Positions 11,901 to 60,278 of a stretch of 64,000 bases of DNA are shown here, in pieces. The stretch is taken from positions 9,532,882 to 9,596,881 of the forward strand of contig OZ199840.1 in assembly GCA_964304625.1 (NCBI GenBank), in the 5' to 3' direction. Source of the stretch: Kudoa neothunni. Lineage: Eukaryota > Animalia > Cnidaria. The position numbers and the translations under genes were made by a program. Numbering within the stretch: the first letter of the stretch is position 1; each line of letters begins with the position of its first letter. The notes beneath the pieces are model-generated. The model saw nothing but the letters and a program-made list of their open reading frames with translations, was not told the DNA's origin and made no database searches.

Positions 11901-12550
11901 CTAAAATTATATAACAAACTTAAAATATTATAATAAATTATAATACAACTATTTGAGTTGATGTTTTCACGTTGGTATTGATTTTTTTTAGTATTCTTGT
12001 ATTTATTTGGAAATCGGTTGAGAATTCGTGTCAGATTACTCAAAATTGTAGAACCGCTTGACACAAGACTACTGCTGTTGGTATTCGACTGCGAACTGCC
12101 GATATTCAACAGTTTTCTCCTGTGTAGCATCAAATTTTTGATACTGAATAAATCACCTATCCGCCCATTAAAGAATTATTTTTTTATATGGAAATAAAAA
12201 AATAAAATTACATTTTTCTTTTATATTGCAAGCTAGATTAGTGTCATTTATGTACCGCCACCTCAATTCTAAATTTAAAAGGTCTATTTCTAGGCAGATC
12301 TGTTGTAGATGTATCTGGTTGTGAGGCAGAGTGTACATATGATTCAGGTATTTTATTTTTCCAGTCTTGATTGCTCTTTGTGTTCCAGTTATATCTTGGA
12401 TGAATTCGATGTACTTTTGCATTTTCTTTACCCCGAACCAATGCGACTATGTCAGTCAAATTAAACAATTAAGTAAACTAGCTAATTATTTGACTAGCAG
12501 TTTTTATTGATCAAACTTCGTTTAATTAATAAAAATATTGCATACAATGA
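9000..12550 (-). pseudogene. Large unidentified multi-exon coding-like region, probably a decayed secreted or membrane-protein gene
   Basis: Spliceable minus-strand exon blocks (e.g. ..LACNIKEK|gt; GDLFSIKNLMLHRRKLL..; VDVEVNFDDNNNYHSF..) and a hydrophobic stretch with stops near 9270-9310. No family recognised. Confidence 0.35.
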
Positions 12551-13302
12551 AATATAATCATTTAAAATTTAATTTAATTACATATTTTATTAATAATATT
12601 AAATTAGATAAATTTTTATTTTCTCAAATAATTAACAAACCTCATATTAGTTTTAAGCTCATAGTTTTCTTATTATAGCCTGTGTTAAAAAGATAATAGA
12701 AGTATCAATGTAGTAATTGTATTTCCTCATGAAAAACATCATTTGAATATTTTTACTAGGTTGGAAATTGTTTGTAAATACTTATTAAATAATAAATATA
12801 AATCTCCCCCGCAACAGAATAGTTACAGATGTACTTATATAAAAAAGAAAATTAACATTATTTTTCGCAAAACTCAGTAATATTTAAGATATATTAATCC
12901 AAAATATCTAATGTGTACCTATATAACAGTTTCCTTAATTATTTTCTAAACAATTTATGTTATATTGCATGATTATTTTTGAAAAAATGGTAAAAATTAA
13001 TAATTTAATGTTTAAAGATATAAATTTTTTTTATCGTTATAAAAATTTCAAAAAATGAATTAACACTCTAATATAATTTAGACATAACACTTTTATCTAA
13101 GATGCATCCATCTATTAAATATATTTTCATCCATTTAGTTAATAATTAATTATTATATAATGTAGAAAGTTCTAATAACAAAATTTTCACTAACAATTAA
13201 AACAATAAAAATATCTTATGTTTACACAATAACATAATTTGTGTGTAAAAACAGCCGAAATAAAATTGTCAGTAGTGTCATTAAATTAAGATCCTGGGTA
13301 TG

Positions 13303-13310
13303 TATATAAA
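13303..13310 (+). promoter_or_regulatory. Candidate TATA box (TATATAAA)
   Basis: Lies about 70 nt upstream of ATG 13378 and is flanked by GC-richer sequence. Confidence 0.4.
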
Positions 13311-13377
13311 CCCTCGATGTTCGACCACTTCGTTTGATAATCTAATACTAAAATTGAATTGTTAGCCCCATTGTAAA

Positions 13378-14617
13378 ATGAAGATCCTTGAGAGTAAAAT
13401 ACACCACGTCGGAGAATATTGCGTGAGAGCAATTTTGGATTTGGAACGAGTAGGTGATATCTATTGAAGGTAGAAAATTTAAAAATAACAATTTAGTTAA
13501 AACTTGACCCCGGTAGAGTATCAATTATGGTAAATATCCCATTGGCCACCGTAGAAACAATTAAATGGATTAACGATTCCACATACACCCCTGAAACCAA
13601 AAAACTAATACTGTCACGCATATACTACTTGGATAAAACAGAAGAGAACAATTTTTCGGTTATAAAATCAAGGATTGCAATGTGTGATGCTCAAGACCAT
13701 TACGAAACAACACAACTTTTGCTGCACAAGGTGTTGAAAGATGCCCCCTACACCACAGTCTCTATGCTACAAGCTATAGTGTCGGCAAACATGCGAACTA
13801 GTATGGCAGCTCAACCAATTATTAAATTGACTGAAGATTTCAAAATCAAGATGACCTACAATTTAAAATGCTCCCAGGCACTAAAATCACGAGATTTTGA
13901 CTATGAAAAGTATTGTTTTGATTTATTTTTATCCGCAGAAATCAACATACTCTGTTTAGCTATAAGGATGATGTGTTAAGGAAATTAGGCCCATCAGCTA
14001 TCAACCCAGATAACACCATTCTTGTCAATATCATCAAAATAAAAGTGATATCACGCTTCTACATAACCAATGATATTGAGAAATATGATGATTGTTGTGA
14101 GGAAAAAGTGCGCAATTTTAGATACGGATTCCATAACTTTTTTGTTTTGATCTCGCTGACCAGGAACAAAATAAACAACGTACAAATAAGAACTGGTTGT
14201 GGTTATAACAGTGACGATGTGGTCGAAGTGCTAAATGAACTTTTCAAAAAGTACGAAACAACAAAAGATCAAATGTTGTTTGTTATGGGTCCCGGTATTC
14301 CATGGGAAAAAGAACACATTTCCGCAATGACCAGAATTTTTGTTAACAATGAAGAACCTGTGGACTTTTTCTCTCAGGCTGGGGTATTCTGCGCTAGTTT
14401 CCAAGAACTCATACGTACAAAAAAATTCGAAGAAATATCGGGAAATGAAGCCACCTCACAATACATGTATCCACTGAAACGTTTGATGGATGACTTTGAG
14501 GTTTACATTCAAGATTGTCCAGTTATTGGGCCAGAAGAGGTTAATAGATATATAATCGAAAAATTTAAAAATTTCACCGAGTCTGTCTCAACCGAAGAAC
14601 TCTATTCCCCTAAATAA
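13378..14617 (+). CDS. Intact 387-aa protein with Tc1/IS630-transposase-like architecture but no catalytic DDE (putative domesticated transposase); exons 13378-13449, 13497-13909, 13939-14617
   Basis: A 47-nt intron (GTAGGT..TTTAG) and a 29-nt intron (GTATTG..CCGCAG) fuse ORFs 13527 and 13973 into one uninterrupted frame. Two HTH-like segments precede an RNase-H-like segment that aligns by eye with the Tc1 copy at 21172-21776. No TIRs seen. Confidence 0.7.
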
Positions 14618-15038
14618 ATCCAAACCCATTAGACTCTAGTTGTAGCCATATTTTCTAATCAAACAGCTTTTTTGGTATCATATGGATTTGTTCAATTATT
14701 TATTTTTATATTTATTCACACAGTATAAATTATAATTCTTCATATTAACTAATGACTAAAACCAGTTTTATACATTGTTTATCTTCTTTGAATGATTCAC
14801 TAATAAAGGTCACCAAACTTCTTTGATTAGTGTAGTTATGAGCTGGCATATTTTCATCGTTATAATATATATATATATTAATATTAATTAATTATGCATT
14901 TAATGATTATTAATATTTCCAAATATTAGATCTGGTAAATACTTATAAAATTTTATCTTTTAATAATTATGAAATTTTTTAGAAATTAAGAGGAACATCA
15001 TTCGTTAACTTCACATTAATTTTAATGACTCCCTAGAG

Positions 15039-15649
15039 CAGTGTTTCTCAACCTTGGATCATATGACCCACATACGGGTCATGGCAGATGTTGTGTAGGT
15101 TATGAAAAATTTTCTGATTAGTTAATATTTAAATGAAATTAAAGATTTTTTATTATTCAAACTAATGTGCATGCAAATATTTATCATCAACGAAATAAAC
15201 TTTTAAACATTTGATTTAACATAGAACTAGATTTAAGTTATAAAATATTCAACTTTGATAAATAATGTGCCTATGTTTAAAAATATAAGAAAGTATTGGA
15301 ATATCTACCAATTTTAATTTAAGGAGAAAATAGTAATGAATTTTTTCACATATTTTAGATTCAATAAGGAAAATTATATATAAAATAATTAAAATGCGAG
15401 AATATCACGAAAATCATTAAAAACATCATGTGGTAAGTCGATAAAGGAGTAGCCTAGTGGTTTAATAATTTTGGTTTCAAGCGAAATATTATTACTTCAA
15501 AGAGCAGCAAAATTAGAGCTAAATAATATTTTTAAATTAACGGAGTAAAAATAATTATGATAAAGTATACGACTTAAATTATCATATATAATACCGGATA
15601 TTTTTTTGAAAACAAATGGGTCACGGCTAAAAAAGATTGGGAGACACTG
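15039..15649. mobile_element. hAT (Charlie/Buster-like) non-autonomous element
   Basis: TIRs CAGTGTTTCTCAACCT / AGATTGGGAGACACTG with subterminal TGACCC/GGGTCA motifs. TSD not clean. A related copy starts at 28064. Confidence 0.7.
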
Positions 15650-15789: not shown

Positions 15790-16514
15790 GTAATGGTCGT
15801 TGGGGTGAAATTTACCCCATATTTTTTTGGATTAAAAATATTTCAAAAGATGTAAACAATTTATAACGTAAATATAATCAAATTCCTATGAGTAGTTTTT
15901 GTAGAAAGTAAGGAAATGTTAGATCAATTGATTAAGGCGCATGCGCCAATTATATGAAATGAGTGATTTTCTTAAAGAAGTCGTTGAACAATTAAACAAA
16001 ATGTTGTTGACAACAAATACCACTAACAAAGCAATAAAAATAGGTCTCAGCATTGTTTATACACCCCAACAGGAACCTCTTCTTAATGCAAAGCGAGAAA
16101 CACGTGGATACAGTGAGAGGAAAAATGATAAAAAATTTCTTAAACGGCGCGAATATTGTTATAAATTTTATTGTCAATTTCACTCATTTAAAAACTGTTT
16201 TAACTTACCGTAACTTTCAAGAATTCTTCGTATGTTTTGTTTTAATATTTCAACTGGCGCAACACATTTAATTCCGCTGCATCAACGCAATTACTTTTTT
16301 TAATGAAACATCGATGTGTACCGATATGGGACGGGTCGTAAACGAAGCTGATTATCGCGTGAATTACGTCAACATTTAATATACATTTACCAGTGTTTTA
16401 TCCAAAGGAATTATGAATTATTCTATGATATTGATTATTAGATTTTTTTAAAGTGTTATAATTCAAAAAAATGTGGGGTGAAATTTACCCCAAAGTCCAA
16501 TACACGTTCAAGGT
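15790..16514 (+). mobile_element. Internally deleted piggyBac-like element
   Basis: Subterminal palindrome GGGGTGAAATTTACCCC at 15802 and 16475. ORF 15941-16213 ends in a Cys/His-rich tail (KKFLKRREYCYKFYCQFHSFKNC) resembling the piggyBac C-terminal CRD. Confidence 0.55.
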
Positions 16515-20709: not shown

Positions 20710-21847
20710 CAGTATTTCAACATCTAAATGCAACGGCGTCGGATTAAGATTAAACTGATTCGCGAAATTACAGATAACCACGTCGGATCATAACTCCCCA
20801 CAGCTAAACGTCACCGAAAGAAAATATGTTTCTTTAGACGGCCCAAAGAAAGAAATTGCCATTAGGTTATCCAAAGTATATGGCGTTAGTTAAACTGTTT
20901 TTGAGAGATGTTAAGGAAAATTGTACCTATGGCCGAATTGCCACAACAATTGGCGTTGGCGTTCACATATCAACATTTCCACGGTTCTTCAAAAAAAGAA
21001 TTCGAGGATGACGATGGGCCCGATGAAGAATGCATTCCTAACAAAAGAGACGGGGACAGGAGGTCAAAATTGACAACCATCCTCAAAAAATTTCAATGGT
21101 ACCTCCCTGTTGCGAGAAATTTTCAGGATTGCATATCAAAACGCAAAAGTGTTTTAATTAATTAACAACAAATGTTATATTTATTAGTTGTTTTAGAATA
21201 TCTGCAATGTAAAACACTCCATTTTCCTGTAATTCACATTGATGAGTGTGGCTTCTCGCTCTCTATGAGACGAATATTTGGAAGGTCATTTTCAGGTTCA
21301 AGAGCGAACTTGAAAATAAAAAGTATTCGATCCAAAAACATCACATTGCTAACCGCTATTAGCCCTGAAAAGGTTTGGACATTTCGGCTGGGAAATAACA
21401 CTGTGAATTAGCAGGTTTTCCATATTATCATAGAAGAACTTCTTGATGAATTATCGAACGACGGAATTCAAAGCGCGTTGTTAATTATGAACAATGTAAG
21501 GTTTCATAAAACAGATCTTATTCGGCAAAAAATTGGTTCAAATGGGCACACACTTTTGTCTCTGCCTCCGTATTCATCATTCCTCAACCCTATAGAGGAA
21601 TTCGTTCACCAAGTAAAATCGATTGTCTGAAGAAAAACGTCCACAAATACAGATGAATTAATGGAAGCTACATGAATAGTCCTGATGAAATAACATCTGT
21701 CCAACTTCAGAGTTATTCTAATCACACAAAGTCATATCTCCCAAGATGTTTAAATGTGGAAGAAATAGAAAATTAATACTTATATGTTTCCTAATTTATT
21801 AATCCATATTGACAACATCACTGTTGCATTCAAGTCTTGAAATACTG
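20710..21847 (+). mobile_element. Tc1/IS630-family DNA transposon (DD34E), inactivated
   Basis: TIRs CAGTATTTCAA..AATGCAAC / GTTGCATT..TTGAAATACTG flanked by TA. Motifs HIDECGF, LIMNNVRFHK and LPPYSSFLNPIEE with 34-aa spacing; second D is now N; stops and frameshifts present. Confidence 0.9.
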
Positions 21848-58162: not shown

Positions 58163-60278
58163 CTATTGAGGGGGGTTATCAATGGGGGAATAGTTGTAGC
58201 TAGGATCAAGAATGTTATTTTCTATAGCAATTTGAAAAGCTTTTTTAAGAGCAATCAAAGCAAGCCCATTGATCGAGTAGATTCCTTTCGACGATCCAAT
58301 AATGTGAAGATGAGGAATAACTTGGTTGACGGTGTTTTCAAAGGTGTCAAATTTCTCCAGATACATCGGTTTGAAAATCGGTAACGCATCGTTGCATATT
58401 TCAAATGAATGAGCGATTGGATTGTCATCAACATCGAAAAGTGTTTTCATGGTTTGTTGTATCATTTTGAAAACAGCACTCTCATTCGATGGATCGATGT
58501 TTTTATTGAGAAGTATTTCTTTCCGAATAAGAAACTAACAGTAAAATTGAAGTTGAAATAAAAATACAAATAAAGAAATTGATAATACAGTAAAGCCGTA
58601 AGTGGGGGGAGAGTCCGGTTTTAATGGAATGAATTCGGTCGATGAGCATCCATGCGAAAGTGTCCCATGATCAAATATACATCCAGATATTGGAAAAAGA
58701 TGTTGTTGATCGTACGGAACAATAAATCCAAATCCAACAACAGGTTGTTTGAAGCTTTTTCTTAAATAAAGCACAGAGAGAGTGATGTGAGTGCTGAATT
58801 CAAGCGAAGGCATCGTCTTCACTAAATCACCGTATGGCAGTATTTTCCTTAGTTGGTTCAACGAAATTGATGACACCACAACGTCAGCATCAACCATACC
58901 AGCACCATCTGTGGCAATTTCCACGGCCTAAATAATTATTTATGCGAATATAAAAAATCAATATTTTTTATTTTTTTCGAATCGATAAATTCGCATAAAA
59001 TTTTCTGTAGAAATACTGTTTCTTTGAGTGGTTCCATAATGGAACCTTTTTTTCTCCGTTCAAGATGTCTCGAGTAGTAGCGTCTAACATCAACATTTGA
59101 AGGATTGATTCTAGTGACGCCGGTGTTGAGTTCTATGGAGGTGTGCTTCTCCGGTTGAGACAGATAGGATGCGGTTTCTTCGATCAACGAGCAAAATCCA
59201 TATTTTAATGTCCAGAAATCGAATTTATTGTAGTAGAGGAATTGGTATAGTCGATAATCGATTGCTTGTTTTTCATCATTCCCACATGAGTGAAATAATT
59301 TTGGATCGAGATCTATAATGGCGAATGCATCTATCACACAGAACATCCACTATTACCTTCTTTTCGTTCCAATACACTATCGTGGAAAGGTATCGTGTAG
59401 GGATTCTCTGGTGCTCTGTAATAGGGTTTAAAATGGTGTTCTTCGAAAGTTTTTCTAAACAATCTAGCACCAAACTCTCGAAAAAATACTGCTGCCGAAA
59501 GTTCCTCAGTTCGGCAACCACAAATTCCCTGCACCATCGGCTCCAATGTGTACTTGATTATCTAGTTCAATGTTAAAAAGCCATCTCATCCAACAAATCT
59601 ACGTCCTCGGTAAAAGCCATCTTGAAAACATCATCCAAAGTTTTTTGTTTCAAATTTTTCAATCGGTATTCAGCAAGATGTGAATCCGTTGACAATCGTT
59701 TTAGAATGTACAAACCTGAAGCCATTCTGGGATAATATCCAAATGTGTATGGTTTCTGCATTGGTATTGGCGCCAATATAAAAGGGAGATTGGTGAGCGT
59801 GGGTTTCAACGGAATATCCACCAATTTGCTGTTGTAACACAGGTATCGGTCGTTAGAGCCATAACTTCCCTTATGTGAAAGCAACACATCATTTATCATT
59901 CCAAGCTCATATGCCTATAACAACATTCAACTTAATAATATGACATTAACGTTCGCTCGCTCACCATAGAAAGCAATATTCCCGCGGAAGTATCACCCAA
60001 AGAAGCAGTTCTAGCACCAACAAAAAACAAATGATCTCGTCCTATTTCCTCAGCCACCACCTGTTTGGTGTTGATCCATCCTCCTAAACGGTCGCCTCGT
60101 TCCAACACTCGTATCTAGGTGGTTTAATTAGATTGGAATTCAATTCATCTCTCATGTGACTAACATGAATTGAACCAGGCACGCACAATTTATTAAGATA
60201 ATAGGCAAATGTCATTCCCGATATTCCTCCACCCAACACAACACACTGAAGTGGTCGACTCCATGTGGTAACTGTCAT
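58163..60278 (-). CDS. PPOX: Protoporphyrinogen oxidase (HemY/PPOX), multi-exon
   Basis: FAD-binding VVLGGGISGMTFAYYL, RLGGWINT, GARTA, EPMVQGI, GFGFIVP and ALPIFKP; short introns including one of 26 nt. Confidence 0.82.

Follow-up and report, generated by a model that had tools for sequence, protein, structure and literature searches.

Only a small number of Tc1/mariner transposases are known to have been domesticated, and the best-known of them retain one module only or are fusions to host domains. The gene described here lies at positions 13378 to 14617 of a 64-kb window (the whole stretch of DNA that was analysed, G000:C3:9532882-9596881) in a parasite genome of 40.3 Mb in four contigs. 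Domesticated transposases of this type are an already known kind, of which this gene is a new, lineage-specific example, and its structure is best appreciated against the closest described systems.

SETMAR (Metnase) arose in primates when a Hsmar1 mariner transposase was captured by a SET gene (PMC2847698). The window gene, as we interpret it, resembles SETMAR in being domesticated with both the DNA-binding and the catalytic domain kept, and the catalytic domain of SETMAR is among the best structural matches of its third exon (3k9j, 3f2k). SETMAR carries a SET-domain fusion, stems from a mariner source (DD34D), has mostly kept its active site (DDN), shows some nuclease activity and still binds the Hsmar1 terminal inverted repeats (TIRs), whereas the window gene has no host-domain fusion, its 387 amino acids all being transposase-derived with no other Pfam domains. 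Five Drosophila genes derived from Tc1/mariner elements, including CG14478, CG4570, cag and toy, are presented in the cited part of PMC13548663 as co-options of one module, be it the DNA-binding or the catalytic one; CG14478, according to that text, preserves the canonical DDE endonuclease fold. According to the same part, these genes were recognised by the absence of TIRs, conserved orthologues, microsynteny and constraint, criteria that were also applied to the window gene here; as far as that text goes, the window gene differs in having both modules in one protein, in the loss of its triad and in belonging to a five-member family. In the cited part of a preprint on Sphaerospora molnari (10.64898/2026.02.11.705288), domesticated Mutator-like element (MULE) transposases are reported as transcription factors in myxozoans, together with expanded DNA transposons including Tc1-IS630-Pogo. 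This is likewise transposase domestication, probably in the same parasite group as the source of the window, but it concerns the Mutator-like superfamily, and the cited part mentions Tc1/pogo elements as abundant repeats, not as domesticated genes.

Our results make it very likely that the window gene is a domesticated, full-length derivative of a Tc1-type (IS630/Tc1/mariner, DD34E) transposase, immobile and constrained, and one of five diverged paralogues. As its catalytic triad is lost, as it is TIR-less and single-copy, and as an orthologue shares its introns and a neighbour, we regard it as an immobile host gene under long-term constraint. It would be a whole transposase, with its helix-turn-helix (HTH) head and RNase H fold, long retained after complete loss of the triad. 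It belongs to a small gene family that has grown in a parasite genome which evolves fast, has few genes and still teems with the parental elements.

Gene model, fold and former active site

Three exons on the plus strand had been joined by the first-pass annotation into one frame of 387 amino acids, and translation through the joins bore this out: 24 codons, 137 codons (13497-13907), one split codon and 225 codons (13940-14614) before the TAA follow one another without a stop. When a script listed all GT-AG intervals that preserve the open frame, the proposed introns of 47 and 29 nt were the shortest solutions, and the orthologue, L044, has introns at both places in the same phases. The parts of the gene are as follows (here and below, positions are those of the 64-kb window unless marked by a contig, C2 or C3, or by a locus, L).

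13303..13310, plus strand: possible TATA box, TATATAAA, 68-75 nt 5' of the ATG
13378..13449, plus strand: exon 1, 24 codons from the ATG, terminating in helix 1 of HTH1 (..VRAILDLER)
13450..13496, plus strand: intron 1, 47 nt, GT-AG (gtaggt..tttag), phase 0, from the frame script
13497..13909, plus strand: exon 2, comprising the remainder of HTH1, an acidic insert and HTH2
about 13506-13577, plus strand: remainder of HTH1, inside exon 2
about 13629-13694, plus strand: acidic insert of low model confidence, inside exon 2
about 13689-13835, plus strand: HTH2, inside exon 2
13910..13938, plus strand: intron 2, 29 nt, GT-AG (gtattg..cgcag), phase 2, from the frame script
13939..14617, plus strand: exon 3, remnant of an RNase H-like (DDE-type) catalytic domain, with the stop codon at 14615-14617
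14613..14618, plus strand: possible poly(A) signal, AATAAA, overlapping the stop codon; weak evidence in AT-rich DNA

The TATA-like sequence reported earlier is indeed present upstream of the gene, but it is weak evidence because the genome is AT-rich (28% GC; values within the window range from 23 to 40% and are mostly about 28%).

Four diverged relatives of exon 3, with 21-26% identity, were found in the same genome by protein search, and a profile search added none:

C2:6765.6-6766.7k: paralogue L005 (locus G000:C2:6764873-6768157), exon 3 relative
C2:6772.0-6773.2k: paralogue, tandem partner of L005, exon 3 relative
C2:9432.8-9433.8k: paralogue L003, exon 3 relative
C3:4745.2-4746.2k: paralogue L004 (locus G000:C3:4744118-4747675), exon 3 relative

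All family members consist of an N-terminal exon of about 115-150 amino acids followed by a C-terminal exon. Database searches were carried out exon by exon. When 1.84 billion representative proteins were searched exhaustively with an HMMER profile, just two further proteins were returned (E 2e-24 and 4e-11), both from one Logan assembly (SRR31175926) of an organism that is even more AT-rich. In a maximum-likelihood tree, the window gene groups with L044 (89/92), L003 with L045 (83/84), and L002 with L005 as the tandem pair (100/100). At least two family lineages therefore have orthologues in the second species (L044 for the window gene and L045 for the C2:9433k paralogue), and these pairings indicate that the duplications are older than the split of the two species. 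Residues invariant in the family alignment (exon 3 numbering) are G117, P118 and I120 in LxVxGPGIPW, G168 in EEIxG, and M176 and P178 in YMxPxxxLM. Two paralogues have features of their own. In L005, at about 1150-1310, two frame changes are needed between the FSFPKD motif and the strand-3 region, and this gene is either a decaying copy or the bearer of extra short introns. In L004 (1056-2703), the HTH region is strongly basic (net charge +16) and clearly Tc1-like, and the catalytic-domain exon continues, in a frame of 421 amino acids, into a long tail rich in Ser and Asn.

An AlphaFold2 model of exon 3, built from a five-sequence alignment (predicted local distance difference test, pLDDT, 67; predicted TM-score 0.68), has the topology b-b-b-a-b-a-b-a (three strands, a helix, a strand, helices, a strand and helices), which is that of the RNase H fold. 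The RNase-H/DDE fold expected by the first-pass annotation was recovered in structure searches, in which Mos1, SETMAR and Sleeping Beauty were found with Foldseek and VIA-align. With Foldseek against the PDB, each of the top 12 matches was a Tc1/mariner catalytic domain, from Mos1 or SETMAR/Metnase, with E values of 3e-4 to 5e-3 and a probability of 1.0. Sleeping Beauty ranked 15, and the matches as a whole had E values of 3e-4 to 8e-3 and probabilities of 0.99-1.0. VIA-align superimposed the model on Mos1 with a Z score of 11.7 and a root-mean-square deviation of 3.5 over 160 residues. Among the ten nearest family sets in the ESM Atlas, nine are DDE_3 (Tc1/IS630) transposases (TM 0.42-0.59), eight of them with TM 0.56-0.59 and 164-169 aligned residues.

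These comparisons also bear on the question of whether the gene might be an RNase H-fold protein of other origin (retroviral-type integrase, pogo/CENP-B-like or mariner-derived) and not of Tc1 descent. Integrase cores score nearly as well in VIA-align (Z about 10.5 versus 11.7), the best-matching solved structures belong to mariner (Mos1) and not to Tc1 proper, and Pfam DDE_3 gives no match. However, Foldseek places Tc1/mariner domains alone at E < 5e-3, the Atlas neighbours are DDE_3 families, each half of the sequence is linked, in the expected order, to the genome's DD34E Tc1 elements, and one particular Tc1 subfamily is singled out by having the same intron positions (both described below). 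Another origin is thus very unlikely. The integrase candidate in particular was rejected on alignment length among other grounds, retroviral integrase cores covering 120-137 residues compared with 160-179 for Tc1/mariner domains. Neither a CENP-B-type N-terminal domain nor DDE_1 was matched in Pfam by the exons or the paralogues.

Alignment with hhalign located the three positions of the former triad:

14027..14029, plus strand: former D1, now Asn (N30 of exon 3; ILVNII on FLDEVG)
14288..14290, plus strand: former D2, now Gly (G117 of exon 3; LFVMG on VFVMD), opening GPGIPW
14477..14479, plus strand: former E, now Lys (K180 of exon 3; YMYPLKRLM on FLNPIENVF)

By this alignment, all three catalytic carboxylates have been replaced (D->N, D->G and E->K), in agreement with the earlier proposal of a catalytically dead protein. 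The profile alignment also confirmed the placement of D1 as N in ILVN and of D2 as G in LFVMG. The E position, on the other hand, had been sought in FQE, whereas the homologous residue is K180 in YMYPLKRLM, and the C-terminal IGPEEVNRY had been equated with a motif one helix downstream of the place where it aligns. Of the six family members that cover D1, five have N there and L003 has G; D2 reads G throughout (7/7), and the E position reads K/D/V/Y/V/V/I. The distance from D2 to E is 63 residues in the window gene and 42 in the shortest paralogue, compared with 34 in Tc1 elements. In the model, N30 lies within strand 26-41, G117 directly after strand 113-116, and K180 within helix 177-191, which we take to be the usual sites of the triad in an RNase H fold. 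With the triad lost, the gene product would be unable to transpose by the known mechanism, and it can probably neither cut nor join DNA.

An enzyme that is still active as a transposase or nuclease with non-canonical residues would fit a kept fold whose best conserved part is the surroundings of the former active site, but such an enzyme, encoded by a single-copy gene with no TIRs, is extremely improbable. Active transposition was rejected because the metal-ligand positions are N, G and K/V/I, none of them acidic in most members.

Probable descent from the resident Tc1 elements

The genome contains at least 436 DDE_3 candidate sites, many of them with open frames, and the locus of the window gene is not among the best 150 of the 436 candidates scored in a loose DDE_3 genome scan. 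Eight genomic Tc1 copies with open frames of 329-366 amino acids made up the reference alignment; as they read as complete transposases, Tc1 elements may still be active in this genome. The claim that every true transposon in the window is broken stood for the one copy checked (20710-21847), which has stops, but it does not extend to the genome, where many frames of 335-366 amino acids are open.

Sequence links to these elements were found for both halves of the family. The N-terminal exon of L004 matches the Tc1 alignment with an hhalign probability of 95% (E 2.5e-8), one transposase over 91 ungapped residues in BLASTP (9e-8), and 27 Tc1 N-terminal regions in the genome. The N-terminal profile of the family (seven sequences) matches the genome's Tc1 over HTH1 and HTH2 (E 1.2e-6), and it does so in the same register when L004 is left out (E 2.7e-4), while the C-terminal profile (seven sequences) matches Tc1 over 171 colinear columns (E 1.4e-4). 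Initial comparisons with profiles of four or five sequences were weak (probability 4-5%) and became informative once the second species and L004 had joined. The individual matches are modest, yet they are correctly ordered, consistent with the fold, and reproduce the HTH1, HTH2, strand-3 and D2 placements of the first-pass annotation, whose HTH region and NFFVLISLTRNKI strand were thereby found to be correctly placed. Together, the fold matches and the colinearity of the profiles with the resident Tc1 transposases support the earlier view that the gene descends from a Tc1/IS630-type transposase.

The introns had been taken to distinguish the gene from transposons, and this part of the earlier argument did not hold. 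At least two structural types of Tc1 element occur in the genome, intronless and two-intron. Many of the best DDE_3 matches have open frames of just about 200 amino acids, and in the copies L007, L008 and L009 the N-terminal frame is separate from the catalytic frame. L007 and L009, both of the two-intron subfamily, are open across their exons. The copy in the window belongs to the same subfamily:

20710..21847, plus strand: broken, compact Tc1 copy of the intron-bearing subfamily (likely source lineage), with inverted CAGTATTTCAA ends and stops

Its end motif was found at 20710, as had been reported, with an inverted partner at 21837, and its DDE_3 match (G000:C3:9554110-9554538) contains 2 stops. 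In L009, a 39-nt GT-AG intron of phase 0 splits HTH1 within one residue of intron 1 of the window gene. The end of exon 1 has its counterpart in the intron-bearing copies, whose first exon ends in ..MRNMVVNLAK, and the I-A pair of the recognition helix falls at exon 2 residues 7-8 in L009 and L004 and at residues 8-9 in L007 and the window gene. Equivalents of intron 1 are 41 nt long in L004 and, in L007, 54-57-nt candidates with weak donors; intron 1 of L009 and of L004 was read from frame translations, the script having given no candidate for L009. All family members have a phase-2 intron of 29-49 nt at the equivalent place, and L007 has one of 39 nt, four residues before the ..EY.. motif. 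This is exactly the position of intron 2 in L004 and three residues off that of the window gene, where the latter has a small insertion.

Judged by position and phase, both introns come from an intron-bearing Tc1 subfamily still resident in the genome. The best genomic matches of L004 are the N-terminal exons of this subfamily, intronless copies scoring lower. The catalytic exon is not more discriminating (E 0.0023 against the intron-bearing subfamily, 1.4e-4 against the intronless set), so that the assignment of the source relies on intron positions and the best matches of L004. As the subfamily has both introns at the same positions and phases, they are no sign of domestication, and, the parental transposon sharing them, introns are not markers of host genes in this genome, which is a methodological warning. 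Other Tc1-like elements with introns have been described, such as Tc1 and Tc3 of C. elegans.

Compared with this subfamily (L007-L009 and the copy at 20710-21847), the window gene has the same HTH1-HTH2-RNase H order, colinear profiles in both halves, a phase-0 intron 1 inside HTH1 and a phase-2 intron 2 in the linker before strand 1. It differs in having N/G/K instead of the DDE triad, a D2-to-E spacing of 63 instead of 34, an acidic insert in place of the basic linker, no TIRs, a single copy at a fixed locus, and an identity too low for Pfam DDE_3.

Probable retention by the host and possible roles

No credible TIRs were found around the gene, only AT-rich chance pairs, and in the window the local Tc1 end motif occurs just at 20710 and 21837, with a one-mismatch site at 59008, and thus not near the gene. 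The gene body is unique at the DNA level; there are not many TIR-flanked copies of it. In the second species, the orthologue L044 is 42%, 33% and 35% identical to exons 1, 2 and 3, has intron 1 at the same place in phase 0 (35 nt) and intron 2 at the equivalent place in phase 2, and has kept the upstream neighbour:

12168..12422, minus strand: divergent upstream neighbour in one exon, kept beside L044 in the second species

The neighbour matches L044:325-870 (minus strand) with a BLASTP E value of 1e-9 and 37% identity over 71 amino acids. The earlier proposals of a gene with no TIRs and retained by the host agree with what we found. Between the window gene and L044, pS (silent sites) is 0.72-0.91, i.e., saturated, and dN is 0.5-0.6. 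From base composition, we estimate that about 8% of random codons would be stops, and two intact frames of 380-410 codons are therefore hard to explain without constraint.

A decaying non-autonomous relic or pseudogene, its frame open by chance, would account for the loss of all the catalytic residues. The lack of reads at the locus in three RNA runs, which are no test of expression, and the frame changes that the paralogue L005 seems to require also fit. At the same time, L044 is intact too despite the saturated silent sites, intron positions, phases and the neighbour are conserved, the gene is single-copy and TIR-less, and some of its motifs are invariant across 7 sequences, making decay very improbable. 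The pseudogene candidate was rejected on these grounds and because a 387-codon frame is open over three exons at 28% GC.

Several observations nevertheless weigh against a domesticated, constrained transposase derivative. The structure models are middling, with pLDDT values of 67-68 on alignments of 5-7 sequences, and the N-terminal model gave no significant fold match in Foldseek and, in a wide VIA search, generic HTH matches alone (Z <= 5.5, residues 64-120), among them the second HTH of Tc3 (Z 4.7), the RED subdomain of Sleeping Beauty (Z 4.5) and the DNA-binding domain of SETMAR (Z 4.3). The catalytic-domain profile match is modest when taken alone (probability 52%). No Pfam family was at or near threshold for any exon or paralogue: DDE_3 (PF13358) and Transposase_1 were without match for exon 3 and the paralogues even at E <= 10, and HTH_SB was sub-threshold for the N-terminal region. 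The HMMER search of 1.84 billion proteins returned no transposase, solely the two orthologues; no relatives of exon 3 came up in a word-based protein search, a feature search of the ESM Atlas gave no usable match, and a sequence-profile search of the PDB produced chance matches alone. Synteny consists of one neighbour, on a 2.3-kb contig, in one other species, and the saturation of silent sites rules out a reliable dN/dS ratio. Three RNA runs with the same species label yielded zero reads over 12900-15100, which does not amount to a test. Finally, and as an argument against DNA binding in particular, the N-domain has a net charge of +2 in the window gene and -3 in L044, compared with +1 to +11 in Tc1 DNA-binding regions.

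As to the sequencing runs, the single DNA-like run sharing the species label matched just short repeat pieces. Runs under this label include very large whole-genome shotgun and restriction-site-associated DNA (RAD-seq) sets, and metatranscriptomes without reads at 12900-15100. This label may denote the host instead of the parasite.

What the protein does can be approached from its two halves. The N-terminal model has helices at exon 2 residues 5-12, 16-27, 65-82, 88-99 and 105-113. Across the family, the charge of the N-domain ranges from -10 to +3 apart from L004 (+16), and in the window gene the basic inter-HTH linker of Tc1 is replaced by the acidic, low-confidence insert. As the N-domain is near neutral and the basic linker is lost, DNA binding is doubtful. 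Conservation in the family is strongest around the former active site (LxVxGPGIPW, EEIxG and YMxPxxxLM), which argues that selection acts beyond the HTH head, on a groove that has been remodelled within the RNase H fold, and favours a non-catalytic binding protein. Our best guess is that the gene product would be such a protein. A DNA- or chromatin-binding regulator is the single likeliest role, although we would give it somewhat less than an even chance, and other protein- or RNA-binding roles would make up what is left beside the one considered next.

The second likeliest role, which we hold to be unlikely, is that of a poison subunit or competitor restraining related Tc1 elements. As a dominant-negative repressor, and thus as a functional alternative within domestication, the dead protein would bind TIRs or form mixed multimers, thereby blocking transposition. 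There are at least 436 candidate sites to be restrained, many with open frames; the family derives from one of the resident Tc1 lineages; the HTH region and the catalytic, multimerising fold are both kept; and the source subfamily has a broken copy 6 kb from the gene. However, the family is old (paralogues 17-35% identical, orthologue pairs across species, silent sites saturated), and its HTH region is recognisable by profile only and has lost its positive charge, so that specific recognition of present-day TIRs or transposase is not to be expected. Five long-diverged paralogues, moreover, suggest functions beyond restraining one element family. We accordingly rate this form of domestication as improbable.

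More speculatively, and with less confidence still, the five genes could represent an old innovation of the parasite lineage, in which the dead site was rebuilt as a GPGIPW/EEIxG/YMxP groove with a new ligand-binding function. If this were true: the groove might serve, for example, in guiding or restraining hundreds of Tc1 copies, or in DNA or chromatin rearrangement; and the family would be more than a generic HTH transcription factor. Should a function in element control or gene regulation be found for the domesticated transposase proposed here, this would illustrate the way in which a reduced parasite genome draws regulators from the transposons that it harbours.

Two repeats lie 3' of the gene. 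One, at 15034-15400, is dispersed, and each of the three large contigs has some of its roughly 40 partial matches (68-95% identity); it bears no relation to the gene body and may be an element resembling a miniature inverted-repeat transposable element (MITE). The other is a 62-nt inverted repeat, 77% complementary and 582 nt apart, at 15794-15855 and 16438-16499, which may mark the ends of a small non-autonomous element.

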